Shown piece by piece: positions 1,986-37,599 of a stretch of DNA of 60,051 nucleotides. Under the pieces are notes generated by a model that was not told the origin of the DNA, made no database searches, and saw only the letters and a list, made by a program, of their open reading frames with translations. The position numbers and the translations under genes were made by a program. How positions within the stretch are numbered: position 1 is the stretch's first letter; each line of letters begins with the position of its first letter. Source of the DNA: Girardia tigrina (taxonomy: Eukaryota); the NCBI GenBank assembly GCA_001938485.1, contig MQRK01243963.1, positions 1 to 60,051 of the forward strand. Reading direction: 5' to 3'.

Positions 1986-2511
1986 CATTCTTGAAAAGAG
2001 TACATTTAATGGTTTACTCATTGATGTTTGTTAATACTCAAAATAAGATATAATCCCATTCAATGTCTTCAAAAGTTTTTTTTAAGAAAAAAATATTTTT
2101 ACATTTCTTTACACCTGATCTTCTTTAAAGTATATGAATCTTATTGCATCTTTTGGTAACAGTTTGTCAAGAAGATAACTCTCATGGTGTAATCTCTTGA
2201 AAATAGACAATAAAATATTTGGATAATAAAATAAATGGGCAAAAAAATTATCAATCAATCTGAATAATCAACACTAAATAAAAAAATTTTATTAGATAAT
2301 AATGGTTAATGTTTTAATGTTTTTAATTCGGTCCCTCCAAAGTCAACCGTTCTCCCGTCTCCGCCAGAAAAATTAACTTCTCCAAATAATAGATTTTCCC
2401 CATAACTTCTATTTGATTTTGCGGGATTATGTTTGCACTCTGCGTAGATTGTTCGGCCACCGTTGGTCTTGAGGTTTGAGTCCCGAACTCAAGGTGTTTT
2501 TTCCGATGAGT

Positions 2512-3860
2512 TTACGTACCAACACTTATTATTAAATCCTCTTTAATTCCTTCCGTCAGTGTTGCAATTAGATCCTCCTCCTCCAACAACTCTATTTCAG
2601 GATCCACCAACGGGTCTAAATTTACCTCCAATATCTTTACTTCTTCTTCGAGATTTCTTTTTCTTCTTTTCTCATCGATCACCATTCTACAGTCTAGCAC
2701 GGTTTTTCTTTTTTGGGTTTCCACTTCTATGGATTCCCAAATCTTATGATCAATATAATTCGGCTCGATTGCCTTATAAATATCCTTAATCGCGATGGCA
2801 TCTTCCAAAGCGTTATGATGACCAGGAATTTGAATGTTCCTATTTAGGATATTCTTTGCCAATATTTGTAATTTAAAAAATGCCTCCTTCTTTGGATTGC
2901 TGACCCATTTTATATAATGTTCTGGCCGCTGATAAATCCCTAATTCCTAGCAATCCCTTTTTATTTATGTTCAATGTTTTTAATTCTAGTTGGAGGTCAT
3001 TCACTACTAGAATTTTTCCAAAGCACAGTTTCTGGACCTCTTCAATGACCTCACATCCTCTGTTTTCTCATCATCGGCTCTGTAATGCCATGATACCTTT
3101 CTCCTGTGCATATAATTCTCTGCCTGGGCGTGGTTAATGTATTGATCAATTTTTCACCCTTAATATTTATAATTGCAATGGATACTAAACTTATTGTTTT
3201 ATCAATCTGTTTCGATGTAAATTCAGCATCCATAAATATTAAATTTTCTTGTATTTCTTTCTTCGATAAGGGTTTCCTTATAAAGCTTTTTTCTCTGACT
3301 AAAGTCCTCCTTTGTTGGCTCATACGATACATTCTCCAGTTTTTCTTTATGAACCCTGAGTTTTGGGTTATAATGTAGATTTTCTGGTTTTTTCCTATAC
3401 TCGATGGCCACTAATGCGGGAGCGTTGTAGGCGCGCACATAAAAATTTAATTATTCTTCCTTTAATTTCCAACTTGTGCGTCGCTCTAACACATTCAATT
3501 CGCTTTCAGTGACGCGAGATGTTATTGTCTAGTCAGCCAAAAATCTGTGGAGATTTTTTGAAATTTCCACCCTATAGGTAACAACATGAAGTTCTAATTC
3601 TCCTGATCATTCCTTTGGAAATATTTCACGTAGTCCTACGGGTTACTTATGCGTCAAAACTCTCAAATGCATTTCCACCTCCAAATCCAACACTCTAATG
3701 CCGTTTGGAAACGCTAAATTATCCGTGAGGGACCTATTTATTCCTATGTTTTCTCGGCCTAAAATTTTCGATAATTGAATATACACGGAATTTTCTCGAG
3801 CTATTCCTTATTCCAGGGTCACTTTGTGTGGATTTGATTGTTGTTGGTTTTGATTTTGAA
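2512..3860 (-). pseudogene. Retroelement-borne REX4/ISG20-like 3'-5' exonuclease with unknown N-terminal domain, copy 1 (frameshifted)
   Basis: ExoI FMDAEF, YHGIT, ExoII ILVVNDLQLEL, IRDL, ExoIII HNALED across frames; homologous to 13735-15350. Confidence 0.8.
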
Positions 3861-3958
3861 CTTCTACAAATAAAAAGATGTTGATTCAAAAAATTAAAAA
3901 ATAATGGCAAATTATGTTTATAAACAAAAACACGCCATTTGTTAAATTTATTTTTTAT

Positions 3959-3997
3959 GACAATTAATTTCGACGGTATAACCGTCATCGTCAGGTC
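3959..3997 (-). ncRNA. Minimal type I hammerhead ribozyme (Penelope pLTR)
   Basis: Exact reverse complement of 4792-4830. Confidence 0.8.
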
Positions 3998-4791
3998 TCA
4001 AGAAAGAAATGAATTTTAAATCTGCTTATATAGGCAAGCAGTGATTATGTNATCAATGGATTATTATGTCATCTAAACACGCTTAATAGGGTTTTCGAGA
4101 GAACCGTTTGCACATTAATCTTAGGATCTAAAGATCTGATATAAAGTGCTTCACAGGCCACCCTCTCCCAATAATTTTTAAAACGAGAACACAGAATTTT
4201 AAAATCATTTATGTTTATAGATCCATTTTTAGGATACTTAAATTCTTTGCATCAAAATATTAAGTTTACAACAGAAACAGAGAATAATGGTAAATTATCT
4301 TTCCTAGATTTACTGATTGAAAGGAAAAGAGATGTNNNNNNNNNNNNNNNNNNNNNNNNNNNNNNNNNNNNNNNNNNNNNNNNNNNNNNNNNNNNNNNNN
4401 NNNNNNNNNNNNNNNNNNNNNNNNNNNNNNNNNNNNNNNNNNNNNNNNNNNNNNNNNNNNNNNNNNNNNNNNNNNNNNNNNNNNNNNNNNNNNNNNNNNN
4501 NNNNNNNNNNNNNNNNNNNNNNNNNNNNNNNNNNNNNNNNNNNNNNNNNNNNNNNNNNNNNNNNNNNNNNNNNNNNNNNNNNNNNNNNNNNNNNNNNNNN
4601 NNNNNNNNNNNNNNNNNNNNNNNNNNNNNNNNNNNNNNNNNNNNNNNNNNNNNNNNNNNNNNNNNNNNNNNNNNNNNNNNNNNNNNNNNNNNNNNNNNNN
4701 NNNNNNNNNNNNNNNNNNNNNNNNNNNNNNNNNNNNNNNNNNNNNNNNNNNNNNNCTATATAAGCAGATTTAAAATTCATTTCTTTCTTGA

Positions 4792-4830
4792 GACCTGACG
4801 ATGACGGTTATACCGTCGAAATTAATTGTC
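4792..4830 (+). ncRNA. Minimal type I hammerhead ribozyme (Penelope pLTR)
   Basis: GAC-CUGACGA-u-GACGG(uuaua)CCGUC-GAAA-UUAA-UU-GUC: core boxes, stem II, palindromic loop III, stem I GAC/GUC. Confidence 0.8.
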
Positions 4831-5349
4831 ATAAAAAATAAATTTAACAAATGGCGTGTTTTTGTTTATAAAAAGATGTTGATTTATTTTTTTTTTTCAT
4901 CTTCACCCATACTGGTTACTCTTGAAAATAAATGAAAAAAAATAAAAAAAGGCTTACGGTGAACACTCTTGAGAAAGTTCATATTTGACGTGGCTGATGA
5001 AATTTAAATTTGTAATAAAAATTTTATTTTATTATTAATTTTTATATTATTTTTTATCCAATGAAAAGTTATTGAGTTATAATGGACACACACATCGATC
5101 GTCTTGGAACTTATCACACACTTACACATCCATAAAAACAAAAAGGTTCAATGATCACAATAATTTCAAGATGTTCATAATGTTATGAGAATAATTATGA
5201 CTCGCTTATACAAATTTTAAAAAAAATACACATTTAAAAAAAATTGTTTTATGAAAGATGGTAACGATATATAATACACAAATCACAATATCATAATGTT
5301 ATGAAAGATGATCAAAGTGATTAAATAAATGTAAATATGTACAAAACAT

Positions 5350-6090
5350 TCATTATTATCTTACACTACCGTCATCAAGTTCATTCGGACTCCTTGAGGT
5401 TCGAATTGACACAAAGGACGTAGGTAATCCGCCTGACTCTTGATCCAATATAAGGTAATGATAAGAAAAATCGTCATTGATAATATGATCCTGCCAAACA
5501 CAAAATAAGCAGTTGAAACTGAGTCCCAATAAAAGGTTTTGAATCGAAAGGTGGTTTGGACCTGTTTTGTTTTATTATCTAAATTAATAAATGTATGATT
5601 AGATAATGAATAATTATAATCAATATTCTATATGATTTCATTGATATTTTCAGTTTTGATTTCTTGTTGCTCCACAAAAATAAGTGTCCATTCTGAGTCA
5701 CTTTTATCAAGAATATAATAATTGATTTTTATATAGTATTCCTCATCTTCTTCTAAGTTAGAAATGGTAATCTTGTTAGCATAATGATTGAGTTCAGCTG
5801 TTCTTGTTATTCCAATGAAGATACAATAGATTATAACTTTTTCATTTTCTTTTGAATTTCTTGAAAAATGTATATTATTGGCATTTATTTTAATTGTTAC
5901 TTTGTTTGTTTCGTTAATTATAGGGATTTCATATGTTTTTTTCATGTGTTGGCATCTAAATATTTCGAGAATAAGTTAAATTATTAAAAAGATAGGCTTC
6001 AAGATAAGTTATTGATATTATATAAGTGTTACCAATTAGTAAATCATCAATAATAACGAAGTGTTTTTGACTGGATAAGGTGACCGTAGA
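5350..6090 (-). pseudogene. FN3-like repeat membrane protein, copy 1
   Basis: HFVIIDDLLIGNTYIISITY and ITISNLEEDEEYYIKINY resemble FN3 L-x-x-x-x-x-Y strands; downstream hydrophobic IILSMTIFLIITLYW; homologous to 15580-16200. Confidence 0.5.
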
Positions 6091-6091
6091 G

Positions 6092-9006
6092 CAGTGGTTT
6101 CCAACCTGTGGGGCGCGCCCCCCAGGGGGGCATGCAGCTGTTTCCAAAATATTATTTTCAAATACAAACCGATAAATTCTAATAGGTGTCAAAAAATGAA
6201 TCAGCAGTATACATAATCCAAAATCCTCGCCGCGAATTTTTCGGGTACAAAGGCTAAAACATCCAATCCATATTCTTTTTGGAACGAAATATCTCGCTTT
6301 CGCNNNNNNNNNNNNNNNNNNNNNNNNNNNNGAATCAAAAGATAAGCACTCGCAACATCCCGGGTATTCTCGTGCTTACTCGCGCCAAACTTCAGTAAAC
6401 AGAAGCATCTGATTGTTTCTGTTTTCTATGAACAAAATTAGTTCGTTAGTAGAGCTTGCGATAACCACGTTGATATATAGAATGAAACGCTTCGCTTTGG
6501 TAACTTCTAAATAAATTAACATTGAGGTAAATTTCATAACTGTTATAATAGTACCAGGAAATGTTAATTTAATGTTGAGTTAGTTTTTCGGCATGAGAGC
6601 GAAGTAACAGGGTTATAAACATCCGAAACAATAAAATAACATTGTAATAAGAGGGCAAGTTATTTTTATGTTGTTTATATTCCAGTAATTAATTTTGACA
6701 AAAAAATAGTTTTTAATTCTACATTTNNNNNNNNNNNNNNNNNNNNNNNNNNNNNNNNNNNNNNNNNNNTATTGATATGATTGTATTGTATTTTAAATTA
6801 ATATAAAGTAATTGATTTAAATTTTAAAATAATACCATTTTTAGATGGATAAATATGTAACAGGCTTGAAAAGAAAATTAAATGAAGCAGAAGCAGTCGG
6901 CAAAAGAAAAGATGATGAAAATATCGGAAATACATCTTCGCAAAATAGTAAACCTAAACATAGAAAATATGATCCAATGTACTTATCATTAGAATTTACA
7001 TATAAGGTTTTTAATGGCCAAGAACAACCATTGTGTTTGCTGTGTATGAATACTTTGGCCTCAGACAGCATGAAACCAAATAAATTAAAACATCTTGAAA
7101 AAGTACATGCAGATCACGTTGGCAAGACAAGAGAATTTTTCCAAAGAAAATTAGAGAATTTAAATAAACAACAAGAAATGTTTTCAAAGACCACGTCTGT
7201 AACACAGAAAGCATTGCTTGCGTCATATAAAGTTTCTTATAGAATTGCTAAATGCAAAAAACCCCATTCAATAGGAGAAACTTTGGTGCTACCTGCAGCT
7301 ATTGACATGATAGAAACAATGCTCGGTGAATCATATGCTGATCAACCTAAAATCATTCCACTTGCAGATAATACGGTGGGAAGACGAATATCCGATATAT
7401 CTGAAGATCTTTGCGATCAATTAATAGAAAAAGTAAAACTATATTCTTTCGCGTTGCAAGTAGATGAGGCTACCGATGTTCTTAAGGATGCACACTTGAT
7501 AACATATGTCATATAGATATGTTGTGGAAACTGATGTTAGAGAAGACATGTTATTCTGTAAACCTATTGAATGCAATACTACAGCAAGGGAAGTTTTTAA
7601 AATCATTGATAATTTTTTTAATGAAAATGTCATTCTGTGGGTGAACTGTGTTGGACTATGCACAGATGGAGCTCCATCTATGGCAGGAAAAAATGCTGGT
7701 CTACAGACACTAGTTCGAAAGGTGTCCCCTCGCGCAGTTTGGACGCATTGCATGATTCATAGTCAATCACTTTTTTCAAGAGATATGTGTGAAGATCTAC
7801 TATCAGTATTTGAAGTTATTACAAGAGTTTTAAATTTTATCAAAAATAGCCCATTACGAGGAAGGCTTTTCGCAAAATTGTGTGATGACATGGGTTCAGA
7901 ATATAGATCACTTCTATAATATTGTGAGGCACGTTGGCTTTCTCGTGCCAAAGTACTTCAAAGGGTGTTTAAGCTAAAAGAAGAGATCGTCATATTTCTT
8001 AGTGATAATAATAGAGATGAAGCACACTTGTTTTATGACACGAAATTCCTTGTAAAATTTGCGTATTTAGTTGATATTTTTCAAAGACTCAGTATTTTAA
8101 ATAAATCAATGCAAGGGGCTCAAATTCATGCTTTTATGCAGAAAGACAAGATTACTGCATTTATGAAAAAATTGGAACTCTGGATAATAAAATTGAAAGA
8201 TAATAACTTTGACATGTTTACCACTTTTAAAATTACCTGTCCTGCTGATGAAATGGAAGAAAGTAAAGTTTTTATTAATAATCATTTGACCAGTCTATGG
8301 AAGCAATTCTCGTTGTACTTTAAAGATCNNNNNNNNNNNNNNNNNNNNNNNNNNNNNNNNNNNNNNNNNNNNNNNNNNNNNNNNNNNNNNNNNNNNNNNN
8401 NNNNNNNNNNNNNNNNNNNNNNNNNNNNNNNNNNNNNNNNNNNNNNNNNNNNNNNNNNNNNNNNNNNNNNNNNNNNNNNNNNNNNNNNNNNNNNNNNNNN
8501 NNNNNNNNNNNNNNNNNNNNNNNNNNNNNNNNNNNNNNNNNNNNNNNNNNNNNNNNNATCTTACCTATGTGAAACTGGTTTTTCTACAGTAGCTGTCTTA
8601 AAAACAAAGTATCGATCTCGCTTAATAATTGAAAAGGAACTGAGAACCGCGATTTCTTCAATGATACCACGATTTGAGAACATTTGTGCTGAAAAACAAG
8701 CTCAACTGTCGCATTAAATTTTTATGTTGTAGTTAGTAATTATTGTAGTAGTATTAATTATATATTCTTTTTTTGTTTGTTATTATATCTCTTATAATAA
8801 ATATATTATGTTTTTACATAATATTGTATATTATTTTGTAGCCCATTAAATAAATTATAATATCAGTTGAGTATTTATGAAATTTGATTTTTATATAAAT
8901 TAACGGTTAATAATTAATGGGACGCAACAATTTGTTTTTTAAAGGGGGACGCAACAAATTATTTTTTAAAAAGGGGGCGCCGGTACAAAAAGGTTGGAAA
9001 CCATAG
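6092..9006 (+). mobile_element. hAT (Buster/Charlie, ZBED5/SCAND3-like) transposon with disrupted transposase ~6845-8717
   Basis: TIRs cagtggtttccaacct / aggttggaaacca; PLCLLC..SMKPNKLKH, LQVDEATD, CTDGAPSM, HCMIH, CEARWLS, SYLCETGFS. Confidence 0.95.
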
Positions 9007-10390
9007 CATTAAACTCATATAATCCTTTGCCATCTGTAAATGTAGATTTCATTTTATGTGCTTCTTTTATTCCAAATTGTCAATATCCACAATGTAAATC
9101 AATTGTCGTAAAGATTTCAGAATTTCCCATTTTATCATACATTGTATTGATTAATGGTAAAGGATAAGTGTCTTTTCTCTTCACTGTATTTAATTTTCTA
9201 TAATCTACACAAAATCTTTGTGATCCATCTTTCTTTTTCACCAGCACTATAGGTGATGTCAATGGTGAGAAACTGGGTCGAATAATATCAAACTTTAACA
9301 TTCCTTTAATTTGTTTTTGAGCTTCATCCTGTAACGCATATGGGATTCTATAAGGTCTTTGCTTGATCGGAATTTCCTCCAACAATGGTATTTCATATTC
9401 CATAATATGCGTTCTTCCAAAATCATATTCGTGTTTTGCGAATACTTTATCATATTTTCTAAGTAATGCTGTGAATCTAGCTCTCTGAATTTCCGTTAAA
9501 TTTGGACTTGTTACTACTGGTGGATCATATCTTTTTATACCTGGAGGAATACTTTTTGGAATTTTTACTTCATGTACTAAAGATACAGTTCTAATTCTCG
9601 TTTGTTGTTGTATGATTTTCGGTTTTACATCAAAATTGGCAAACCTGACTGGTATCGATTTTTGTGAGACTGATACTATTTCGCTACACATTTGAATATC
9701 ATATTTCTTCATAAACTCCTCATTTGGTTGAAAAAGTAGATCTCCTTTGATGTGACTGACTACATCTGCATGATATACTAATTCTGCTTGATAAGGAATT
9801 TCTAAATTTTTGCTGATAAACACATCAGATACTCTATGTAAGATTTTTCTATCAGGTATAGATAACAAATTTCCGCTTTTTAAATCCAGAGAAACTCCTA
9901 ACTGTTGCAAAACATCCATACCAAGCAATAATGATTCTGGGCAACTTTTTGAAATTAATACATTTGTTGTAATAGTCTTACCACCAATTTTTATTGACAC
10001 TTCTACAGTTCCTTCAATAGCTAGATAATGACCTGTAACTGATTGTAATCTTTCAATACAAGGTGCCAGATTTAATTTTTCAGATGCCAGAAGCATCTTT
10101 TCATCAACAATTGTGACTGCTGAACCAGTGTCAACTAAAGCTGTAATATATCTATCATTTAATAAAACAGTTATTGTTAATCTTTTGCCGAATTTAGTTC
10201 TCACAGCAAAAACATAATTACTTGGTAAACCCCATTGATTTCTTATTTCAACTTCTCTTTTTTGTTTTTCCTCTGAATTTACAGTTTCAAGATTTGGATC
10301 GACATGTTTCATTTCCTTAAGTTGTAGGAATGGATAATTCGGTAATGGTTCAAAACTCGACGGATTGAATGGTGCACCTGAATTTAACAT
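9007..10390 (-). pseudogene. Ty3/gypsy pol fragment: aspartic protease + N-terminal RT
   Basis: ALVDTGSAVT, LLGMDVL; PIKQRPYRIP, SPIVLVKKKDGSQRFCVDYRKLN, IDLHCGY*Q, YEFNAM cut at the hAT end. Confidence 0.95.
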
Positions 10391-10920
10391 TCATTTGTAG
10401 TTGATTCTCGTAATCTTTCCACTAGCTTTTAGATATTGTTGATGCCGTTAAATTGCTATTACTTACAGTTTCATTTCCAATTTCACTTTTTCTTCCATCA
10501 CTTGTTACACTTGGAACTATCTGAGACAGATTCAAATTGTACTTTTTTATTTCCTTTTTTAAACTTTTTTCGACGTTTATAAATTTTCATTTCTGATTTT
10601 AATGTATTTATTTCTTTATGATGATGGTGAATTATAAAAAATTTCGCTATCATAGGAATTGTTGGGTATTCGAAAATATTTTTGTTAACCACTTTAAGCA
10701 AGCTTTCGAATATAATTATCTGACTCCTTTTCAAACGGTTCTTCCAACTTTGTATTTAGTTTATCAATTGATTAACCCTCTCTTGAGGTTACAATTAAAA
10801 ATGAATCTCATCGGAGATTAGTTTTCAAATATTAACAATAGTAATAAGTCAAAGGAATTCTTTTCAAAAACTTTATTCAATTGAATCACAAAATTCTTCC
10901 GAATAATACAACGTATAAAT

Positions 10921-10944
10921 AACAATGGAGGATTCCAGAATATT
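10921..10944 (-). promoter_or_regulatory. Putative non-tRNA primer-binding site
   Basis: Directly after the LTR end and before gag/pol on the minus strand; complementary to the minus-strand transcript of 15419-15443. Confidence 0.5.
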
Positions 10945-10945
10945 T

Positions 10946-13604
10946 TGTAAAATCTTCTATAAAAAATATAACTATTATATTTAAAATTTCATTTACAAAT
11001 TTTTTATGTTTTTGGGTATTTATACCCGTTTGATAATAAAAAAATTATTAAATTTAAATTAGTTTGATTTAAAATATAACTTTGAAAAAACATTAATTTA
11101 AAAATTTAAAACATTAATTTAAAATTTAAATTAGTTTTTAATATTAAACCCAAATTTCCCTTTTAAAAAAATTTAAAACTTTAAAAAAATTTGCATAAAT
11201 TTGTTTTATCGGGCTTAATTACCCATTTATTTAAATGCTCAATTTATTTAGTGACAAGAAACTAATCCCAACGTAATTGCTGGTTGATTAGTTTTTAGAT
11301 CCAATAAAAATAGTGGGCATAATTGCCCATTTCATTTTATGCTGGATANNNNNNNNNNNNNNNNNNNNNNNNNNNNNNNNNNNNNNNNNNNNNNNNNNNN
11401 NNNNNNNNNNNNNNNNNNNNNNNNNNNNNNNNNNNNNNNNNNNNNNNNNNNNNNNNNNNNNNNNNNNNNNNNNNNNNNNNNNNNNNNNNNNNNNNNNNNN
11501 NNNNNNNNNNNNNNNNNNNNNNNNNNNNNNNNNNNNNNNNNNNNNNNNNNNNNNNNNNNNNNNNNNNNNNNNNNNNNNNNNNNNNNNNNNNNNNNNNNNN
11601 NNNNNNNNNNNNNNNNNNNNNNNNNNNNNAGAGTTTCAATTTTGATACCAATCTTTTAAACCGAATGTTCACATTACTATTAGTTTTTTTCAAAATTGAT
11701 ACCTGTTTTTTTTCTAAATAAATATGTAAAATAAATATTGTGATTTTTTTAGCTATTTTTTCCTTCATCTAGACCCTCAAGCAAACACACTAATATTAAA
11801 AATAAATCACTTTCGTAAATCAGGCTACTAATGGTTAATATAATAATAATAATGATAAAAATAATAGTAATAAAAGAATAGTAAAATAATAAAATACTAA
11901 TAATATTAATAATTATAATAATATAACAATAATAGCAAAAATAATAAATAATAATAATAGTAAGATAATATAATAACAATAAAATAATAAAAATAAAATA
12001 ATAATAATGTTAATATAATAATAATAATAAAATAATAATAAATAATAATCATTTTTTTTCAAAACCTTCAACGGCTTTTCCCAACCAACACAGGCGTGCT
12101 CCCTTAATGAACGGGCCCCTGCTAGGGAGGAAAAACTCGTTGACAGAATTTAATAATAAATTAATAATAATTGTTTTTTATAAAAATATAATAATGACGA
12201 AATAATAATAATAATATTAATAAATTGACAATATTCAAAATAATAACAATAAGTCTAATAAAAATATAATAATGATAGTAATAATTATGAAATAAATAAT
12301 AATAATAATATTATAATAATAATAATTAAATAGTTATAATTTTAATATAATAAATAATAATACTAAAATAATATTATTAATATTGGTAATATTACTTATA
12401 CAGATACAAATTATCCCTATTAACTACCTGGAGTCCCTGAGCACTGAGCTNNNNNNNNNNNNNNNNNNNNNNNNNNNNNNNNNNNNNNNNNNNNNNNNNN
12501 NNNNNNNNNNNNNNNNNNNNNNNNNNNNNNNNNNNNNNNNNNNNNNNNNNNNNNNNNNNNNNNNNNNNNNNNNNNNNNNNNNNNNNNNNNNNNNNNNNNN
12601 NNNNNNNNNNNNNNNNNNNNNNNNNNNNNNNNNNNNNNNNNNNNNNNNNNNNNNNNNNNNNNNNNNNNNNNNNNNNNNNNNNNNNNNNNNNNNNNNNNNN
12701 NNNNNNNNNNNNNNNNNNNNNNNNNNNNNNNNNNNNNNNNNNNNNNNNNNNNNNNNNNNNNNNNNNNNNNNNNNNNNNNNNNNNNNNNNNNNNNNNNNNN
12801 NNNNNNNNNNNNNNNNNNNNNNNNNNNNNNNNNNNNNNNNNNNNNNNNNNNNNNNNNNNNNNNNNNNNNNNNNNNNNNNNNNNNNNNNNNNNNNNNNNNN
12901 NNNNNNNNNNNNNNNNNNNNNNNNNNNNNNNNNNNNNNNNNNNNNNNNNNNNNNNNNNNNNNNNNNNNNNNNNNNNNNNNNNNNNNNNNNNNNNNNNNNN
13001 NNNNNNNNNNNNNNNNNNNNNNNNNNNNNNNNNNNNNNNNNNNNNNNNNNNNNNNNNNNNNNNNNNNNNNNNNNNNNNNNNNNNNNNNNNNNNNNNNNNN
13101 NNNNNNNNNNNNNNNNNNNNNNNNNNNNNNNNNNNNNNNNNNNNNNNNNNNNNNNNNNNNNNNNNNNNNNNNNNNNNNNNNNNNNNNNNNNNNNNNNNNN
13201 NNNNNNNNNNNNNNNNNNNNNNNNNNNNNNNNNNNNNNNNNNNNNNNNNNNNNNNNNNNNNNNNNNNNNNNNNNNNNNNNNNNNNNNNNNNNNNNNNNNN
13301 NNNNNNNNNNNNNNNNNNNNNNNNNNNNNNNNNNNNNNNNNNNNNNNNNNNNNNNNNNNNNNNNNNNNNNNNNNNNNNNNNNNNNNNNNNNNNNNNNNNN
13401 NNNNNNNNNNNNNNNNNNNNNNNNNNNNNNNNNNNNNNNNNNNNNNNNNNACATTAATTTACGAAAACATAAAATTTACTTTATTTTAGAATCCTTTATA
13501 TAGCGAAATTCTAAATTTATTGAAATATAAAATTAACTTATTTAAATCTAATCTTAACGAAACCGAACATTAATAATATATATTTTTTTTTCAGATCCTT
13601 GACA
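10946..13604 (-). repeat. Long AT-rich LTR, copy 1 (contains gaps)
   Basis: Minus strand starts TGTCAAGGATCT and ends AGATTTTACA; PPT upstream; direct repeat of 17572-19072. Confidence 0.8.
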
Positions 13605-13615
13605 TATCTTCCCTT
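13605..13615 (-). promoter_or_regulatory. Polypurine tract
   Basis: Minus strand AAGGGAAGATA immediately before the TGT of the LTR. Confidence 0.7.
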
Positions 13616-13734
13616 AATGGAAAGATATTGTCCCCAATATCAATTTAAAAAGGAAAAACAAATAACAATAAGTTTAACAATAATTTTATTAAATTATAAT
13701 TTAGATGGAATATTTATTCAGAGTTTCTTTCAGA

Positions 13735-15350
13735 TCATATCTTCCAATTCAAGACGTGTCCATTTTCCGATACGTATTGAATTTCGGAGACGGACGCCCT
13801 GAAAGTTTCTCCGTGGACCTGCAATTCCGGTAAGATATTGTTTCTTGGTTCAGGTGGAATATCGCAATGTTCTAAATTTTGTATTGTTAGATTTTTATTT
13901 ATTGACTTTGGTGGAATCTCGAAATGTTCCATATTCTGGATTATCAATTTAGTTTTTACTTTATTTGATTTTCTATTTCGTTCAGGATTTTCTGGATAAT
14001 TTGAGGTTGATGGCATCAATGCATTGAACGTTGATTGACACGTCACCGGTTGAAGCGCGTCATCCCCAATGTCTTGCGGAATCACAAGATTTTCGCAAAC
14101 ATCCAAATCAACTTCATTCTGCCATGCCATGATCAAATTCTCATTTGGCTCTCTTTGAATTAATGGTGATTGACACAAGATTGCTGGTACTCCAGACTTG
14201 AATTTCTTCGGTTGAGAATGTTCAACATCTCCAACGATGGCTGGAATTTTCCATCGCAAATCTTCGTGATTAAAATGAATGTTGTCAATATAAGAATCTT
14301 CAATTGTTCGATATAGATTCATAATTGCTTTTGTATCCTCAAATGAATTATTTTGTCCTGGTTGTTGGATTTTTATCTTCAAGATTGAAGCCGCCAAAGT
14401 TTGGAGTTTATAGAATTGTGCACCGCCTTTTGGAGAAAGATTGAATTTTTCTTGAAATGTTTTTTGCACCAGCCAGATCACGAATGCCCAACAGAGATTG
14501 TTTGTCAATGCAGAGGTTGTTCAGCTCCATTTGGAGATCGTGACCAACCAAGATTTTACCACGGCATAAAGATCGAATTTTTTTTAATGCCTCATATTCG
14601 TCCATTCGATTTCGCAAGTGGATTTCTTTCAACCCATGAACCTGATCTGCCAACTTTATTATTCGATGTCTCGGAGTAATTAAGGTATCCAGAACGGTTT
14701 TCCCATAACCGTTTAGAATTGAAATTGACAATGGAGCCTTGGATCCATCTGCCATTTGGCAAGCGAATTCTCCATCCATAAAGAGAAGGTAATCATTTAT
14801 TTTGTCCATATCGCTTCGTTTTCTTATAAAACTTTTTCTTTGCTTGTAGTCTTCTTCGAATGGATGGTATTGTAATCCTTCTAGACTCCCGCTATCTTTC
14901 CAGCGCATTGGATTGTAATGTTTTTGGGGATATTTTCTTAATTCAATTGCTATAATTACATGTTCAGTTACTGCTCGAATGCACAGTTCCATATCCTTTG
15001 GTGTGATCTCCCAGGATGTGAATTTGGATATTTTGTTGGATAAAAGTCTGTCCTTTCCAAAAATGAGAATTGTTTCTGAAATAACGTGCAATTCAATCGT
15101 CCCGTCATTCATTCCAGTACATAATTCCTTGATTGTTTTTTGTTGTTGAAGTTGATAATTTTCCCAGATATATCTCCATCTCTAGATCGGTGGTTCGAAG
15201 AATATTGGGTATGACGAGGTTGTTGGAGTAGCAGCGATGAGATTTTCCAGATTTGCTGAGAAGACTTCCAAATTCTTCGTAAACCTCCTGACGTTTTGGC
15301 TGAATGTTGCGGAGAAGAGGTGGTGTCATTTGGTTAGATTGTTTTTTATT
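13735..15350 (-). pseudogene. REX4/ISG20-like exonuclease with N-terminal unknown domain and low-complexity C-terminal tail, copy 2
   Basis: ORFs 15105-15329, 14408-15112 and 13735-14508 join by frameshifts: FMDGEF, VHGL, ILVGHDLQMEL, IRDL, NNSFED. Confidence 0.85.
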
Positions 15351-15579
15351 GATCTGAAATAATATTAAAATATTAAACTAGCACAACATAATTTTAAAAT
15401 ATTATTTATATATTAATTAATAATTTGGGATCCTCCAATTGTTTTACAGTAAAATAAAAATAAAGATTACAAGGTTTAACAGATAAATAAAGTTAATAAG
15501 GATGAACACAATATAAAGCATAATTGTTTAAATCAAAATTATGTCAAAATGTAACTGTACAAACATGCAATTTACTCAC

Positions 15580-16200
15580 AATTATACAAAGTTGACCGTT
15601 CTCCAGAGTATCCACTTGAAAGAGGTTCTTGGTTCCTGGATCGGTTTCTCTTTTTAAGGATCACCAGACATTGTATAATAGACATTGTTAATAGAGCAAT
15701 GATGATGAAAAATAATATGATTAAAACAAAATAATAGTTATAATCAAAATTAAGAATTGTATTGTTTATAGTTTTTGATCTTTGAACGATTTGTCCTCTG
15801 ATTTTCTGATTGTAAGGAATCTAATATTCGATTCATTTCTGAAGGTTTGATTATCCTTTAAAACAACTTTGGGGTTTTAATAATTTGTTCCTCCACGAAG
15901 GTAGTTATCCATTTATTTCTAGTGATATCTTTACGAAAGTATGAAAATTTTACAAAGGTTTCTTCGTCTTGAAGATTTAACATTTCACCATTTGATTTGA
16001 AATAATTTAATATAACCCTTTGATGTAAGGTTATTAAGGTATTTATAATGATAACTTGTTCATTTTTATTTGATTTTCTATAGAAATATATCTTGTCTGA
16101 AGTTACATTGATAATTACTGAATTGGGTTCGATTTCCAATTTTACAATTCGAGTTTCAGTATAAAAAAAGTATTCATTTATTATAGTTATAACTCAAATT
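15580..16200 (-). pseudogene. FN3-like membrane protein, copy 2 (3' part)
   Basis: SVIINVTSDKIYFYRKSNKNEQVII...NLQDEETFVKFSY aligns with copy 1; TM segment YFVLIILFFIIIALLTMSIIQCLVIL followed by KKRNR. Confidence 0.5.
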
Positions 16201-16209
16201 ATCAAGCAA

Positions 16210-17280
16210 TTGAGCTTCAAAATATATTAAATTTAAAATGTAATTTTGTCCCATTGTAAGTTCATCGATTTAGTCGTCTGTCGGGATCGTCTAACACCGG
16301 TTTAGGTCTTCTGGTGGAGGAGCACGTCAATTTGGCTGCGCGCGTGTAACGAGGACCGGGTTGCAAGGATCGTGAGCGTGTCGACAATGTTGACGACGAA
16401 CTCCAGTGACCGGTACTCGTCGAGCAGACTGAGCAGACAGTGGTGCGTCTCTTCGATCGTGTCGGACTCATGGTGGAAGCATCGCGCCGGTTTGATCGAC
16501 TCGATCTTCAGTACGGGTCGCTCCTCGAACATCGTCGGGCGAATCGGCTTGGGCATCTCTGTGACGACAAGAATGATGATAATGAGGCGATTATCGATCG
16601 AGGCGAGGAACATCGTCCAACTGGTGAATATCAACAATGATCGCGAGCGATTGTTCCAGTTATCACAGATTATTAACTGCTGGAGTCATCGGAAATATAA
16701 TTTGTCGTGGCAATTAATTTGTGATGACATAACAAATTATTATGAACCAGAGAGTTCCGCGAAATGTGGGAGCATAAAATCGGTTGTCGATTCGCAATGG
16801 TGAATTGAGAATTTTCAAATTTGTTATAAATCAAAGACATCACTCGATTGTCGATTTTAAAATTGGAAAAAAATTTATTTTCAAAAAATAATGGCATTCC
16901 ATACAATGTTTACAAATTCAAATAAATCCATAAATTAATTGATTACATTAGATTTGTAAAACTAATTCGAATTTCTATTAGTATTGTTTTTTTTATTTGT
17001 ATTTTTAGTAATTTTAATTTGATAATTAATATCAAATATTTTTTTACTAATTTTATCATTAAAATAGCAAAAACACATGAATCATCGTTTGGATGTCTTT
17101 TCTTGAATTAATCAAATAACTGCTTGAAATTTGGCGAGGTCTTCAAAAAAAATGAGAGAACATTGTCACGTTTTACATCATGTATCTTGGTCGAAAAATT
17201 GAAATTATAAATAAGAAATATAGGATTTTTTATATATATTTAATATTTATAAATATTGATTAAAATTTTGTGTCACTACA
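16210..17280 (-). other. Insertion carrying a GC-rich ORF fragment (16302-16637) of unknown function
   Basis: Sharp rise in GC/CpG; strong G/C third-position bias in the minus frame; splits the FN3-like ORF. Confidence 0.45.
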
Positions 17281-17484
17281 ATCGATAATAAGAAAGGGTT
17301 TTGAATTTAACAATATTCTAGAGACTGATCGTGAACCTCTTGAATATTGAATTAGAACTTTTTCGAGTTTCTTTAGTTTGCTGATTATAATGATTTTTGA
17401 CCAAGAAGGTTCTATTGTAAGCAAAGTATAGGCATCTTTAGTCCAAATTTGCATGAACATTATAAATTGAGGTTCCAAACCCAA
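17280..17484 (-). pseudogene. FN3-like membrane protein, copy 2 (5' part)
   Basis: SKPFLIID aligns with QKHFVIID of copy 1. Confidence 0.4.
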
Positions 17485-17571
17485 AACTATTATATTTATT
17501 AAATATAATATAAATTATATAATAAAAATTAATATAATATAAATTATAAAATAAACTATTATATATTAAAT

Positions 17572-19072
17572 ATATAACTATTATATTTAAAATTTCATTT
17601 ACAATTTTTTTGTGAAAAAAATCTTTATGTTTTTGGGTATTTATACCCGTTTGATAATAAAAAAATATTAAATTTAAATTAGTTTGATTTAAAATTTAAC
17701 TTTGAAAAAACATTAATTTAAAATTTAAATTAGTTTTTCATATTAAACCCAAATTTCTCTTTTAAAAAAAATTTAAAACTTTAATAAAATTTGCATAAAT
17801 TTGTTTTATCGGGCTTAATTGTCCATTTATTTAAATGCTCAATTTATTTGGTGACAAGAAACTAATCCCAGCGTAATTGCTGGTTGATTAGTTTTTAGAT
17901 CCAATAAAAATAGTGGGCATAATTGCCCATTTCATTTTATGCTGGATAATATTTTTAGGTGAGAATTTTATTTATTTATTTTATTTTTTTATATTTTTTT
18001 TATAATTTTAATAATAATAATATTAACAATAATAATAATATAATACTAATTATAATAATAAAATAATAATAAAAATAATATAATAATAATAAATTGATAN
18101 NNNNNNNNNNNNNNNNNNNNNNNNNNNNNNNNNNNNNNNNNNNNNNNNNNNNNNNNNNNNNNNNNNNNNNNNNNNNNNNNNNNNNNNNNNNNNNNNNNNN
18201 NNNNNNNNNNNNNNNNNNNNNNNNNNNNNNNNNNNNNNNNNNCCTAGAGTTTCAATTTGGATACCAATCTTTTAAACCGAATGTTCACATTACTATAAGT
18301 TTTTTTCTCAAAATTGATACCTGTTTTTTTTCTAAATAAATATGTAAAATAAATATTGTGATTTTTTTAGCTATTTTTCCCTTCATCTAGACCCTCAAGT
18401 AAACACACTCATATTAAAAATAAATCACTTTCGTAAATCAGGTTACTAAGGGTTAATATAATAATAATAATGATAAAAATAATAATACAATAAAATAATA
18501 ATAATAAATTAATGATAAACATAAAATATAATAATAATAATAAAATAATAATAGATAATAATCATTTTTTTCAAAGCCTTCAACGGCTTTTCCTAACCAA
18601 CACAGGCGTGACCCCTTAATGAACGGGCTCCTGCTAGGGAGGAAAAACTCGTTGACAGAATTTAATAATAAAATAATAATAATTGTTTTTGATAAAAATA
18701 AAATAATAATGACGAAATAATAATAATAATATTAATAAATTGACAATATTCAAAATAATCAAAATAATAACAATAAATCCAATAATAATAATTAAAGTTA
18801 TAATTTTAATATAATAAATAATAATACTAAAATAATATTATTAATATTGGTAATATTACTTATACAGATACAAATTATCCCTATTAACTACCTGGAGTCC
18901 CTGAGCACTGAGCTCAAACAAAAGGGAAGTTACAAAGGGATTTATCACCACATTTTATTTTATTTTTTTGTTATTTATATATATTTTTAATTTAATTTTA
19001 TCTTTTAGGAGGGTAAGAATTATATTTTTAAATTTTAATTAATAATATATATATTTTTTCAGATCCTTAACG
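17572..19072 (-). repeat. Long AT-rich LTR, copy 2 (3' end lost), abutting the env-like gene
   Basis: Direct repeat of 10966-12450 plus 13570-13604; starts (C)GTTAAGGATCT; no PPT upstream. Confidence 0.8.
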
Positions 19073-19870
19073 GAATATATCCAATTATTAATTTCCATGA
19101 ATATCCCAAAATTGTATATAATCTATATGTTGATAAAATTTGAGAAATTACAACTTTGGATATCGTAAAAATTTACATATATTTCGATTAAACCAGCACA
19201 AGCTTGACCAAAAAATATAAATTTTCCCCATATTCTTTTCATCCTATTCATAGTGGCTCTTTGATAATGATCTGTACTCACAAAATTATCGTAGTATACT
19301 TTTCCTACTCTATAAGGTAAAACGGTATCAATGATTTCATTCATAATTCTTTCTTTTTTAGAGGGAAATAAGAAATTTCGTCTTGAATCTTCAATTTCTT
19401 ATGGTGAATAAATACCAATTGTTGACATTTGATCTAAAGACGTAAAATTTATTAAATATTCTAATTTTGTTAAATCCAATTTTTCGATGCCTTTAACTTC
19501 TTTATTATTTGGTAACGAAATCCACATTTCTGGTGTTAAGCGATATAAGGGTGATGTTATCTCATTGCATCGTAATTTTCTGGGTCTTGTTCCATTTACC
19601 ACCAGAATTCGTGTTATAGGTTCTACGAATCTTAGTTCGCCTTTATAACTAACTGGAAGTTCATTTGTACACTCAATATGTTTTATTATTTGAAATGATA
19701 TTTCTTTACATTTATAACTATACAATGCTTCACCCATAATTCGTCCAAATACACCTTTTTCAGCGACTAATATTGGAGCGACTAGATTAGGATATTGGAA
19801 AGAAATGGGTACTGAAACGAAAATAATTGAATTAAAAAATATCTTTATCTCTTGTTTTAATAATTCACTT
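19073..19870 (-). pseudogene. env-like glycoprotein resembling chuvirus-type (class III) fusion proteins, C-terminal part
   Basis: GEALYSYKC..CTNELPV..FVEPITRILV..C..PLY..W; membrane-proximal FGQACAGLI..LYTILGYSWKL across a frameshift. Confidence 0.75.
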
Positions 19871-21214
19871 GGTGTAAAAATTATCATCGTGTTTACTTTT
19901 TTTTTCTCGTGTTTATCTGAGTGGAATGTACAAGTTATTTTGTGAGAAGATTTATATAAAAATGAAAATGTTGAATCGAGTTTATTCTTCATTTATTGTG
20001 GAGCCGAACACAAAGTGGATATATTTTGATTACAATCTCAGTATTTTGTTGTGGAGTATCGAGTGTGAACCCCCCAAGGAAGTGTTGCTGACCAAGTTGG
20101 ATAGGCAAGATGGCGCCTCCTGTTCATATTCCGAACGCCATCACTCAGCGGTAATCTTTATATTCAACTTATGATTTCTCTTTCCATTCCGTCACAAGGG
20201 ATCCCAGCGATATGTGGACGAAGGTATACAGACCAACTCATCAGCGTAATCTCACACATATCAACACGGTGTGACTATGCGTCAAAGCCCTATAAACTCG
20301 CTTCGATTATATTAACAGATATCTTCGTGGTGATTAGACGTCACCACAAGGTTTATCAAAGTGTTTATCACAAAATGATTAATGATTTTTTTGGAAACAG
20401 ATATAAACGAGTGAGAAGGCCAAGAAAAGTCGAATAGTAGGGTTTCTTCAAATTACATGAATTTTGATCCAAGAAGCGCAATGTGAAACTCAGAATGACG
20501 GGAAAAACCATAAATATAAATAAAAAAGTAATTCATCATATTCTGATATATGATTTTGGCAAAACAAAAGTATGTGATATATTTGTGTTCTACACACACC
20601 TGCCAAAGGATATGAATTGATCAGAGTGCAAATATTCCATAGAGTTCATACAAGCAACAAATAACAGTAAAACATTCTTAAACCTTCCCTCCCTTGTAAT
20701 GTGTACTTAGTTCAATACTAACTACTGTACTTTGCTTCAATATAATAAATATGATGTTTTAGATTTTAGATATTCCTCAGACATATATTTGTGTGTTTAA
20801 TTAAAAAAATAATACTTTTCATAATTATAGTTTCTTAGATTCATGAAGGATGATTTCTGAAAAGTATATGTTATAGTATACAAAAAGTATACATGTTATA
20901 ATATTATTAGAGTATTTCATATTATTAATTTTTTGATTTTTTAAAATTTCTTTAATGATTTTTTCATGTTTTCAGCAATTATACAAAAATTATTAAGATT
21001 TTTAACTTTATTTATAAACAACTGAATATTTATAACAATTCAGTTAAATGAATCATGATAATTTTTATTTTTTCAATCTTAATATGCTAATTAAAAATGT
21101 GTTGTCACTACACAACCCCGGAACACACGGAAGTTTTTTTCACTGTAAAGGAAAGGTTAAATTGATTTTTAATGTTGAATGTTCATGGCGTGGAAGTGGC
21201 GATGAGCCTGCTAC

Positions 21215-21630
21215 AGAATCCAAAGTGAGGTTAACTACGAGTAAGCATCTGGCTACCGTCTTCTGGGATTCGAAAGATGTGATCTTGATGGATGTTTTAG
21301 AAAATGGAAAAGTTTGCTGGAAAAGCTGAAGACAACTATCCTGGTAATACAACGACGGAAAACCACGGACGGTTTTCTGTACCTTCTTCAGGACAACGCA
21401 TGTCCACATGCGGTACATCTCACCCAGTCCAAGATTGCCGAAATGCATCTAAACATCCTGCCATATCCCTCCTATTCGCCGGATCTGGTTCCTTCAGACT
21501 ACTATCTATTTTCACCAATGAAAGTAGCTTTGAAAGGTCAGAACTGTGCATCTTCTGAGAAGGTTCAGGAGAAACTTCAGGAGTGGTTGAACACTAAGGC
21601 CGGATCCTTCTTCGAGAATGGTATCTATAA
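21215..21630 (+). pseudogene. mariner transposase fragment
   Basis: LATVFWDSK, LQDNACPH, YSPDLVPSDYYLF. Confidence 0.85.
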
Positions 21631-21927
21631 AAATAAGTATTCGAGTATACTTATAGCCGAATACTTACTTTTACTAATAAATAAAAATAATTTACAAAAT
21701 TAACAACGTCAAACGATTAGAAAAAATAACGATAATCTGTAAAAAAATAAAAAAATAACCTTTTAATAAACAAAAATTTATTCATCATCATAAATAACAT
21801 ACAGTAGTCGCAAACGGTAAATAATTAAGTTGATTATCAATTATTGCTTTAATGATCTCTTTTTAATTCAAATTAGAATTATTATTTCTGTTAGAGCAAA
21901 AAAAAATATATACAGACATAAGAGAAT

Positions 21928-28463: not shown

Positions 28464-29711
28464 TTAGGTTGGGGAAAAAGTAATCCATTATTTTAATCCA
28501 TTATTTTAATTCATTATTTATCGATCAAGCAATTTCAAATTTATGCTCTTTGTCAAGGTAACATTTCACAAAATTTTTTTTGCTTTTTTTATTCAGTTCT
28601 GAGTTACAGGGTGTTGAAAATGGAAGTCAACAAAGAAAAAATTCGGTACATTTTACAGTTTTATTCGATAAAGGCGAAAATGCAAGCCAGGCGGCTGTTA
28701 TTGTGAATGGTGTTTATGGTGCCAATACTGTAACAGCTAATTACATGCAATTTTGGTTTCGTCGATTCCGTGGAGGCATTTTTGATGTTAAAGATGCACC
28801 TCACACAGGCAGGCCTATCACTGAAAATGTCGATAAAATCTCGGCAATGATCGAAGTTGACCGGCATGTTAGTAGTCGTAGCATCGCACAGGAGCTGAAT
28901 ATCGACCACAAAACGGTTTTAAACCATTTGGGCAAAGCAGGATTCAAAAAGAAACTTGATGTTTGGGTTCCACACCAATTAACACCAAAAAACATGATGG
29001 ATCGAATTTCCATCTGCGAAGCCTTGGCCAAACGAAATGAAATCGACCCATTTCTTAAACGGATGGTTACTGTGGATGAGAAATGGGTCACATACGACAG
29101 TATTGTACGAAAACGATCGTGGTCAAAGCACCTCAAACGGTCGCCAAACCAGGACTAACGGCCAGGAAGGCTCTACTGTGTATTTGGTGGGACTGGAAAG
29201 GAATCATTTATTATGAGTTGCTTCCGTATGACCAAACACTAAATTCAGATCTGTACTGTCAACAACTTGACCGTTTAAAGATAGCAATTGATGTGAAACG
29301 ACCAGAATTGGCCAACAGAAGAGGTGTTGTGTTCCATCACGACAACGCCAGACCACATATGTCTGTAGTGACTCACCAGAAACTCCGGGAGCTTGTTTGT
29401 TAAGTTTTAATGCATGCAACATATAGTCCGGACCTGGCACCAAGCGATTACCACCTTTTTCTCGCATTGCAAAATTTCCTGAGTGATAAGAAATTGGGAT
29501 CAATAGAAGATTGTGAAAATCGATTACTACAGTTTTTCTCCAATAAGAACCAAGGCTTCTACGAGAGAGACATTATGAATCTACCTTCAAAATGGCAACT
29601 AATTATACAACAAAACGGTGCATATTTGACTCCAAGAGGACAATCCGAAACATGTTAAATAAAGTTTTGAATTTCACGCCAAAATAATGGATTTCTTTTT
29701 CCCCAAACTAA
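28464..29711 (+). mobile_element. Full-length mariner (DD34D), transposase 28620-~29640 disrupted
   Basis: TIRs ttaggttggggaaaaag / ctttttccccaaactaa, TA TSD; MEVNKEKIRYIL, WVPHQL, TVDEKW, HHDNARPH, YSPDLAPSDY. Confidence 0.97.
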
Positions 29712-31050: not shown

Positions 31051-31066
31051 TTTGGCTTAACGGTCT

Positions 31067-37585: not shown

Positions 37586-37599
37586 TTTTATTAGACGAA

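Follow-up and report, generated by a model that had tools for sequence, protein, structure and literature searches.

A DEDDh-type exonuclease gene and an FN3-like domain in two decayed, probably envelope-bearing Ty3/gypsy elements of Girardia tigrina

Genes and remnants at the locus

This study concerns contig MQRK01243963.1 of the Girardia tigrina assembly GCA_001938485.1, whose whole length of 60,051 nucleotides (nt), AT-rich (about 29% G+C) and interrupted by eight runs of N, is hereafter called the window. Between positions 2400 and 19870 its minus strand carries the remains of retroelement genes, which we assign to two units: a host element, H, and a unit lying within its limits, N. Read along the minus strand, H comprises an env remnant, a linker, an aspartic protease, a partial reverse transcriptase (RT), a stretch of foreign DNA and gaps, a first copy of an FN3-like domain, an insertion and a first copy of an exonuclease gene. 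N comprises a long terminal repeat (LTR_A), an AT-rich leader, a GC-rich island, second copies of the FN3-like domain and of the exonuclease gene, a polypurine tract (PPT) and a second long terminal repeat (LTR_B). The FN3-like domain and the exonuclease gene are called cassette 1 in H and cassette 2 in N. The lengths of the scaffold gaps are estimates only, and no coding frame of the elements could be followed through any gap of the window.

At the upstream end of H, the env remnant (19080-19827, minus strand) corresponds to the C-terminal third of a Monjiviricetes-type fusion glycoprotein, membrane anchor included, in agreement with the env-like glycoprotein recorded in an initial annotation of this DNA. 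Specifically, the open reading frame (ORF) at 19.4-20.0 kb matched the Pfam family PF24664 (Monjiviricetes_fusion) with an E value of 3.6e-19 over profile positions 354-480 of 653, and a second piece, located downstream, matched positions 517-560 of the same profile (E 9e-5). The N-terminal two thirds are missing, and the remaining part contains at least one frameshift and at least one stop codon. Throughout the window, queries ended at each frameshift and pieces lying in different frames were never joined. A PDB sequence search gave no match for the env piece, for which a single close database relative was found, and a comparison with the giant ORFs of the relatives described below detected neither gag nor the N-terminal part of env above position 19830, even at an E value of 0.1.

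The env-protease linker, the aspartic protease (Pfam RVP and gag-asp_proteas) and the N-terminal part of the RT of H occupy positions 9002-10945 of the minus strand, with one stop codon in the aligned stretch and the RT cut short. The best solved relative of this RT is that of Ty3 (4ol8, E 7e-21), with the foamy virus enzyme (E 3e-7) and that of caulimoviruses far behind; the protease-RT noted initially on this strand was thus correctly recognised. The named database entries related to the protease-RT segment are spider polyproteins of the gypsy group, about 32% identical to it. The RNase H and integrase of H, expected between 6304 and 8557, are absent from the window. Plus-strand ORFs are found at 6845-8717, where the C-terminus of the RT, the RNase H and the integrase would be expected, and gaps 6304-6331, 6727-6769 and 8329-8557 lie within or beside this stretch; we take these ORFs to be a hAT transposase of the FAM200/ZBED5-like kind, with no Pfam family matching above threshold. 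H would have lost its RNase H and integrase later, to other insertions or to assembly gaps.

Each element carries an exonuclease copy and an FN3-like copy on the minus strand. The exonuclease copy 1, identified with Pfam and tblastx, maps to 2512-3804, can be aligned over about two thirds of the length of its relative, and contains at least three frameshifts and four stops, with all five catalytic residues kept. Copy 2 (13735-15329) spans the full length of the 510-amino-acid (aa) relative P0123, has at least two frameshifts and no in-frame stop within the aligned pieces, and keeps four catalytic residues out of five. Matches to RNase_T were weak in the window and clear in relatives, and the best PDB sequence match was ISG20 (E 0.004). 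The FN3-like domain copy 1 maps to 5664-6005 (tblastx, blastp and a structure model), and copy 2, found by tblastx against copy 1, to 15870-16223; of this gene only a beta-rich domain of about 90 aa survives in either element. Comparison of the two cassettes gave eight collinear minus-strand tblastx matches, amounting to 403 aa at 39% identity, so that their description as diverged and collinear stands. The gene order proposed initially, an FN3-like transmembrane protein followed by an exonuclease, was likewise recovered twice by tblastx; its transmembrane part was not, as the membrane segments that flank the FN3-like domain in the relatives were undetectable in the window copies.

The FN3-like assignment comes from structure modelling. 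A model built from the two-sequence alignment of the window copies (pLDDT 76) showed a beta sandwich of eight strands, and its top 50 fold matches were almost all FN3 domains or monobodies, at weak scores (E 2e-3 to 1e-2, template modelling (TM) score about 0.5). The Pfam fn3 family matched none of the window pieces, nor the corresponding protein and C-terminal extensions of the relatives L003, L006 and L008.

Some further sequences accompany cassette 1. The two genes are separated by an unrelated insertion (3889-4897, strand not assigned) with no Pfam match, in which a 145-nt inverted repeat of 94% identity surrounds gap 4336-4755. Its arms, at 3889-4033 and 4756-4897, have the form of a foldback-type insertion or of a palindromic assembly artefact. 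Just above the FN3-like copy 1, a short GC-rich stretch (6040-6170) gives the same reading in ORFs of both strands; it may be a short interspersed element or a tRNA-derived repeat. A purine run at 2573-2584 was considered as a PPT and rejected, being coding poly-Glu sequence.

Long terminal repeats and structure of N

Self-comparison identified a direct repeat, 10948-12450 versus 17552-18914, which is the sole long direct repeat in the 2400-19870 range. After refinement by alignment, LTR_A, the 5' LTR of N, was placed at 17545-19072 on the minus strand (about 1.53 kb, including a gap of 143 N), and LTR_B, the 3' LTR, at 10946-13604 on the same strand, with about 1.5 kb of LTR plus gaps 11349-11629 and 12451-13450. 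The two repeats are 87% identical over the 3' 420 nt or so and 76% identical over the 5' 830 nt or so. LTR_B begins with TGT, as does the LTR of the independent contig L009, and ends with ACA, while LTR_A begins with CGT and ends with ATA; a TATA-like box is found in LTR_A about 80 nt from its 3' end.

Gap 11349-11629 falls within LTR_B; LTR_A is collinear with LTR_B on both sides of it and is itself interrupted by a gap at the corresponding position. The 5' part of LTR_B is broken by gap 12451-13450, a run of 1000 N. On its cassette side are the PPT and about 45 nt from the beginning of the LTR, with the remainder beyond the gap, so that the order fits and contiguity is unproven. In addition, about 110 nt of LTR_B ahead of this gap do not align to LTR_A.

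The PPT of N is an 11-nt purine tract (13605-13615, minus strand) directly 5' of the start of LTR_B, defined by a three-way alignment of LTR_A, LTR_B and L009. It lies about 120 nt below the stop of exonuclease copy 2, and the same arrangement is seen in L009. These data bear out two points of the initial annotation, namely the presence of long LTRs with a PPT on the minus strand and the end of cassette 2 right before them. In the same alignment the upstream flank of LTR_A proved to be H sequence with no PPT. An earlier placement of the LTR_A start at 18952, where an A-rich run had been taken as the PPT, was abandoned on this basis in favour of a start at 19072 and a PPT below cassette 2.

A candidate target site duplication (TSD), ATATTC, was found on the minus strand at both ends of N: the upstream copy (19073-19078) touches the start of LTR_A, and the downstream copy (10938-10943) lies 2 nt from the end of LTR_B, for which reason we retain it as a candidate. 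We estimate a probability of about 0.004 for the chance recurrence of a hexamer of this kind at a distance of a few bases.

Between LTR_A and the FN3-like copy 2, the minus strand of N carries an AT-rich internal leader (16651-17544), in which neither the ORF list nor Pfam gave a gene, and a GC-rich island (16250-16650; 53-55% GC, compared with about 29% in the genome). An ORF in the island matched the Pfam family PF24436 (INTS7_N, N-terminal part of Integrator subunit 7) at E 1.8e-11 and 44.3 bits, with a cut-off of 42; against the INTS7 sequence in PDB the match reached an E value of 0.8 only. The island is not present in the relatives; capture of a fragment of a host gene, foreign DNA and a chimeric assembly are all conceivable origins. 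N contains no gag, env, protease, RT or integrase; it would therefore have been mobile only with proteins supplied by others. From the 13% divergence of its LTRs, we conclude that its insertion is old.

Relatives and family plan

Related sequences were sought by several routes. A scan of metagenome contigs with the exonuclease alignment found no relative, and a word-based protein search returned two close exonuclease relatives only. A HMMER search with the exonuclease yielded 188 representatives, of which 37 reached E ≤ 1e-10; lengths of 430-680 aa and alignments starting at the first residues were frequent. Genomic surroundings were examined for several of these and for close relatives of the RT. 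In seven independent external loci from four samples (L002, L003, L006/L007, L008, L010, L011 and L012) the module is located downstream of pol and on the same strand, four of these loci having env and pol in a single giant ORF, and intact exonuclease ORFs of 434-684 aa occur in at least eight unrelated contigs.

The individual loci show variations on a common theme. L002 contains pol followed by a gene with an FN3-like domain. L003 carries an RT, an RNase H-integrase, a 383-aa protein with two membrane segments and a 575-aa exonuclease. In L008, the RT-RNase H-integrase continues into a C-terminal extension with the FN3-like domain and a membrane segment, followed by a 522-aa exonuclease. L006 consists of a gag-like gene, a 3003-aa ORF and a 446-aa exonuclease gene, and L007 is a fragmented version of it from the same sample; in the 3003-aa ORF, a PF24664 match (E 5e-80) is followed by the protease, RT, RNase H and integrase domains and by an extension of 475 aa. 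L010 follows the plan of L006, with a 3108-aa ORF and then a 684-aa exonuclease, and L011 has a 3700-aa ORF that includes a CCHC knuckle, then a 222-aa ORF and a 434-aa exonuclease. In L012, pol is followed by two tandem exonuclease genes of 446 aa and 443 aa (6909-9923).

Taken together, the relatives display a family plan in which gag and env precede the protease-RT-RNase H-integrase; an FN3-like domain bracketed by two hydrophobic helices comes after the integrase, and a separate exonuclease gene of 434-684 aa stands last. In the complete plan that we propose, an LTR would stand at the gag end, and a PPT and an LTR would follow the exonuclease gene. The protease-RT-RNase H-integrase order is complete in L002, L003, L006, L008, L010 and L011. 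Homology of the FN3-like domain was detected between the two window copies, L008, L002, L006 and L011 (with copy 2 as blastp query, E 7.5e-11 to the pol C-extension of L008 and 6e-4 to L002), and in L006, L008 and L011 it lies in frame with the integrase. The spacers between pol and the exonuclease gene measure 230-370 nt. A hydropathy scan of L006, L010 and L011 revealed four strong segments, two of which bracket the env ectodomain and two the FN3-like region.

In L006, L010 and L011, env lies between the gag side and the protease, within one ORF with pol, and the window is collinear with this order apart from N. The window matches these giant ORFs both in env, at 36-51% identity (tblastn), and in the RT, at 36-42%, the RT of L008 being closer (63%). 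These data support the assignment of env to the same lineage, which had initially been deduced from adjacency and orientation; its attribution to the 3' cassette has to be dropped, as the order is gag-env-pol. The coding sequence of the relatives is about 12-13.5 kb long. The term 'giant' used for these elements is therefore apt as far as they are large for Ty3/gypsy elements, and too strong when they are set against the giant gypsy elements of planarians, which exceed 30 kb; no search returned a sequence of the latter for comparison.

Two short contigs of 1.7-1.9 kb, L004 and L005 (Logan SRR12687059 and SRR13496040), contain hardly anything besides an intact exonuclease ORF of 510-512 aa, and may represent transcripts or domesticated copies. 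L002 (GCA_051646305.1, JBOFCV010000293.1) is a 4.6-kb contig in which a eukaryotic gypsy protease-RT-integrase and the FN3-like gene are found within a Turicibacter metagenome-assembled genome (MAG).

Fold, catalytic residues and selection of the exonuclease

The structure of the exonuclease was predicted for the 510-aa relative P0123, with a pLDDT above 90 across the exonuclease domain. This domain superimposed on ISG20 with a TM score of 0.81 and a root-mean-square deviation of 2.1 Å, and also matched ISG20L2, PAN2 and SDN1, the TM scores to ISG20 and ISG20L2 ranging between 0.77 and 0.81. At the sequence level, the relative P0276 matched Pfam RNase_T with 28.4 bits, the cut-off being 24. 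In a library of viral structures, the matches were DEDDh proteins of giant viruses and proteins named 'small RNA degrading nuclease-like'. Besides the exonuclease domain, the model shows a conserved, cupin-like beta-barrel at the N-terminus, then a disordered linker, and a small beta domain at the C-terminus. The cupin-like domain gave weak fold matches only; among its conserved columns, which contain one His and one Glu, no metal triad of the AlkB type was found.

All five DEDDh residues (D, E, D, H, D) are kept in 26 of the 31 family representatives. The third motif contains His and not Tyr, and the nearest folds are those of ISG20 and PAN2, not of RNase D or WRN. The remaining five representatives (P0129, P0145, P0152, P0155 and P0161), with ORFs of 417-609 aa, have none of the five catalytic residues, except for one which keeps a single residue; they may be inactive binding variants or misaligned sequences.

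Comparison of L009 with the in-frame C-terminal piece of copy 2 gave dN 0.116, dS 0.625 and a dN/dS ratio of 0.19, this being the one unsaturated pair; a second pair gave 0.12 with dS near saturation, and the others were saturated. The intact ORFs of 434-684 aa in at least eight contigs agree with purifying selection.

Two members of one lineage, one nested in the other

We regard it as probable that the window contains two decayed members of one envelope-bearing Ty3/gypsy (Metaviridae-like) lineage that carries the FN3-like/exonuclease module. With the seven external loci and the dN/dS ratio of 0.19, the initial proposal of an endogenous-retrovirus-like Ty3/gypsy lineage with an old, conserved module is upheld. 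The alternative that the exonuclease and FN3-like ORFs are host genes or pseudogenes which merely lie beside transposons draws on the short contigs L004 and L005, with their intact exonuclease ORF alone, on the closest solved structures, which are cellular enzymes, and on the INTS7-like fragment of N, which indicates that host-like sequence can sit there. We give it hardly any credence: the same order and strand downstream of pol recur in the seven external loci with spacers of 230-370 nt, the FN3-like domain lies in frame with the integrase in L006, L008 and L011, the PPT and LTR directly follow the exonuclease gene, and the ORFs of the relatives are uninterrupted, with no sign of introns.

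As regards the arrangement of the two elements, the giant ORFs of L006, L010 and L011 align first to window positions 19800-19100, the C-terminus of env, and then to 10300-9000, the protease-RT. The spacing between the env and protease matches is 290-410 aa in the relatives, compared with about 300 codons summed from the two window flanks, which were compared separately, H not being closed across the insertion. The simplest reading of these alignments is that N, consisting of the LTR pair and cassette 2, would have been inserted into H between env and protease. The foreign upstream flank of LTR_A, the PPT that precedes LTR_B as it does the LTR of L009, and the candidate 6-bp TSD speak for this reading as well. 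Furthermore, the cassettes are 39% identical at the amino acid level versus 87% nucleotide identity for the LTRs; therefore LTR_B is not H's own and the LTRs belong to N alone. Since the cassettes are far more diverged than the LTRs, H and N are different members of the lineage. It follows that the long LTRs, which had been thought to bound the protease-RT and env, bound the nested N with cassette 2 only, and that env, the protease-RT and cassette 1 belong to the older H.

A tandem array could also be envisaged, in which env and LTR_A form the 3' end of a gag-pol-env element, the LTR_A-cassette 2-LTR_B segment is a deleted unit and LTR_B is the 5' LTR of the protease-RT. Arrays sharing LTRs are common in general, the distance between the end of env and LTR_A is about 10 nt, and the LTR start that was initially assumed is preceded by an A-rich stretch. 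The true start of LTR_A lies 120 nt further up, though, with no PPT ahead of it. Beyond LTR_B, the ORF list shows no gag ahead of the protease, nor was a primer site found there. In addition, env stands directly upstream of the protease in one ORF in the relatives, the flank lengths agree with this, and cassette 1 is too diverged from cassette 2 to share LTR_B. We thus consider a tandem array very unlikely.

A scaffolding artefact, in which LTR halves were misjoined over gaps, the true locus being a solo LTR in H with cassette 2 derived from elsewhere, appears improbable to a somewhat lesser degree. The gaps lie at the same internal place in both LTRs, the stretch of about 110 nt before the 1000-N gap lacks alignment to LTR_A, and the gap lengths are estimates. 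On the other hand, three junctions are free of gaps, namely env/LTR_A start, LTR_A end/N interior and LTR_B end/H linker; the start of LTR_B and the PPT lie on the cassette side of the gap; and a 13% difference between the LTRs helps an assembler to separate LTR_A from LTR_B. The family-level conclusion is independent of the scaffold order at this locus.

A number of observations weigh against our interpretation of two nested members of one such lineage. Concerning N, it is known from a single scaffold with gaps in both LTRs, and the join of cassette 2 to most of LTR_B crosses the 1000-N gap; the downstream copy of the candidate TSD is offset by 2 nt in AT-rich surroundings; and no primer-binding site was recognised below LTR_A, with no tRNA gene in the window for comparison. 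Concerning H, no LTR was found, as no repeat joins 1-2500 to anything above 19900 in the self-comparison. All element genes in the window are broken, with no sign of activity, and both H and N are dead. As for the relatives, the external loci were read with 10 kb of flank, within which no LTR pair of any of them was reached; L002 is named as a bacterial protease, through an evident contamination of the MAG bin; the membrane topology comes from a simple hydropathy scan; and the five exonuclease representatives of 31 that lack the catalytic residues fit a binding role as well as decay.

Proposed mode of action

The recurrent hydrophobic pattern suggests how the gene products might be arranged. 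With an even number of hydrophobic segments per outward domain, one polyprotein could keep Gag-Pol cytosolic and expose the fusogen and the FN3-like domain. Specifically, the giant ORF would be made as a membrane-threaded polyprotein; through its two hydrophobic pairs, the fusion glycoprotein and the FN3-like domain would come to lie outside or in the lumen, and Gag, protease, RT and integrase would stay in the cytosol. Owing to its own ORF and to the spacer that precedes it, the exonuclease would be an accessory protein made apart from Pol.

The fold and catalytic residues suggest that this protein would act as a 3'-5' RNA exonuclease of the ISG20/REXO/PAN2/SDN type, equipped with a cupin-like N-domain, and that it would most likely trim or destroy RNA 3' ends to the benefit of the element. 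In the reading that we prefer, it would remove small silencing RNAs of the host or immune-stimulating RNA; alternatively, it would take part in processing the RNA or primer of the element itself. An action against host RNA-based defence or sensing is possible, and we tentatively favour it over a role in replication chemistry, on the grounds that the enzymes closest in fold all attack free 3' ends of RNA, that in some representatives catalysis is lost and the ORF kept, and that the gene was duplicated in one case.

A replication role, with the enzyme trimming the 3' ends of primer or template RNA or proofreading the RT product, seems to us less easily defended and somewhat unlikely. The gene is nearly always present, its catalytic residues are kept in most lineages and the elements are unusually long; moreover, the nidovirus exonuclease ExoN offers a precedent for proofreading in long genomes, as described in 10.1101/2021.02.01.429129. 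Against this role, the exonuclease is encoded by a separate ORF outside Pol, five of the 31 representatives lack the catalytic residues and yet have long ORFs, the gene is duplicated in L012, and the enzymes nearest in fold have free RNA 3' ends as substrates, for example those of small RNAs, poly(A) and rRNA precursors. None of these points is decisive.

A bolder scheme combines an ExoN-like enzyme that would trim piRNA, siRNA or immune-stimulating RNA, a single flavivirus-like membrane-threaded polyprotein comprising Gag, Env, Pol and FN3, and an FN3-like domain that would partner a class III fusogen; taken as a whole it is doubtful. To our knowledge, neither an anti-defence exonuclease nor a membrane-threaded Gag-Env-Pol-FN3 polyprotein has been described for a retroelement.

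Comparison with known systems

The closest parallel to the organisation reported here is found in the gag-env-pol errantivirus-like elements (Chary and Hayashi 2026, PMC13524379), which likewise occur in invertebrates and have a Ty3/gypsy pol, long LTRs and, between gag and pol, a fusogen of the gB or RNA-virus type. This gene order with a gB-type env was reported for Nematoda, Bryozoa and Platyhelminthes (PMC13524379), and the nematode elements with a gB-like env are credited to Sacco et al. 2022 (J Gen Virol 103:1739), cited here through the account in PMC13524379. An exonuclease, a post-integrase membrane domain and a gag-env-pol arrangement in one ORF are unmentioned in PMC13524379. The env class assignment of our elements is that of the PF24664 match, and the link to the gB fold is taken from PMC13524379.

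Extra exonuclease genes are also known from LTR elements. The Juno/Vesta elements of bdelloid rotifers carry a DEDDy exonuclease of unknown function as ORF3 (Rodriguez et al. 2017, PMC5408684), and the likeness consists in a 3'-5' exonuclease of the DnaQ-like superfamily encoded as an extra ORF after pol. The rotifer enzyme, however, is RNase D-like, with an altered ExoI motif and no membrane or coiled-coil partners, whereas the enzyme described here is of the DEDDh ISG20/REXO type, has a cupin-like N-domain, adjoins an FN3-like membrane domain and belongs to env-bearing elements. With the cellular enzymes ISG20, ISG20L2/REXO, PAN2 and Arabidopsis SDN1 it shares the fold and the five catalytic residues; the sequence similarity is marginal, and the N-terminal beta-barrel, the disordered linker and the C-terminal beta domain are additional here.

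The uptake of a glycoprotein of the Monjiviricetes/chuvirus kind by an LTR retroelement has a counterpart in the mosquito element Anakin, which captured a chuvirus-like glycoprotein (Dezordi et al. 2020, PMC7642597). Unlike the elements studied here, Anakin belongs to the BEL/Pao superfamily, is reported to have env after pol and has no reported exonuclease. Virus-borne DEDDh exonucleases are represented by the ExoN of the arenavirus nucleoprotein and of nidovirus nsp14, which are cell-derived and serve immune evasion or proofreading according to 10.1101/2021.02.01.429129. The analogy with our exonuclease is a functional one only: those enzymes are domains of RNA-virus proteins, the similarity goes no further than the superfamily, and they are absent among our fold matches.

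In the literature covered, no ISG20/REXO-type exonuclease or post-integrase membrane domain is reported for gypsy elements; Sacco et al. 2022, outside this coverage, could show extra ORFs. The module of a DEDDh exonuclease and a membrane domain thus appears to be unreported, the gag-env-pol order and DEDDy exonuclease ORFs being already known.

Extra genes are rare in retrovirus-like elements and reveal the limits that such elements meet in their hosts. An RNA exonuclease of the DEDDh type, maintained by purifying selection in many diverged lineages beside a fusogen captured from an RNA virus, would have its counterparts in the exonucleases of arenaviruses and nidoviruses, and paleovirology would gain a new marker gene, specific to a deep branch of the gypsy elements with an envelope. 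The recurrence of the four-helix pattern poses the question of how a cytosolic Gag-Pol and two outward-facing domains could be obtained from one reading frame. On the practical side, exonuclease and FN3-like ORFs of this kind should be masked as transposon genes and not annotated as host genes, one relative having already entered the MAG of a gut bacterium.

Other repeats and transposon remnants in the window

Outside the two elements, the window contains three copies, 82-86% identical, of an additional, unrelated repeat family, at 31065-31343, 37323-37614 and 57917-58208. The RNase H-integrase of another gypsy element was found on the plus strand at 36000-37200, ending just before one of these copies. 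Finally, two remnants of mariner/Tc1-like transposases, with matches to HTH_48 and HTH_Tnp_Tc3_2 and a weak match to DDE_3, are located on the plus strand at 21048-21703 and 28580-29403, the former occupying the place where the N-terminal part of env or gag of H would be expected.

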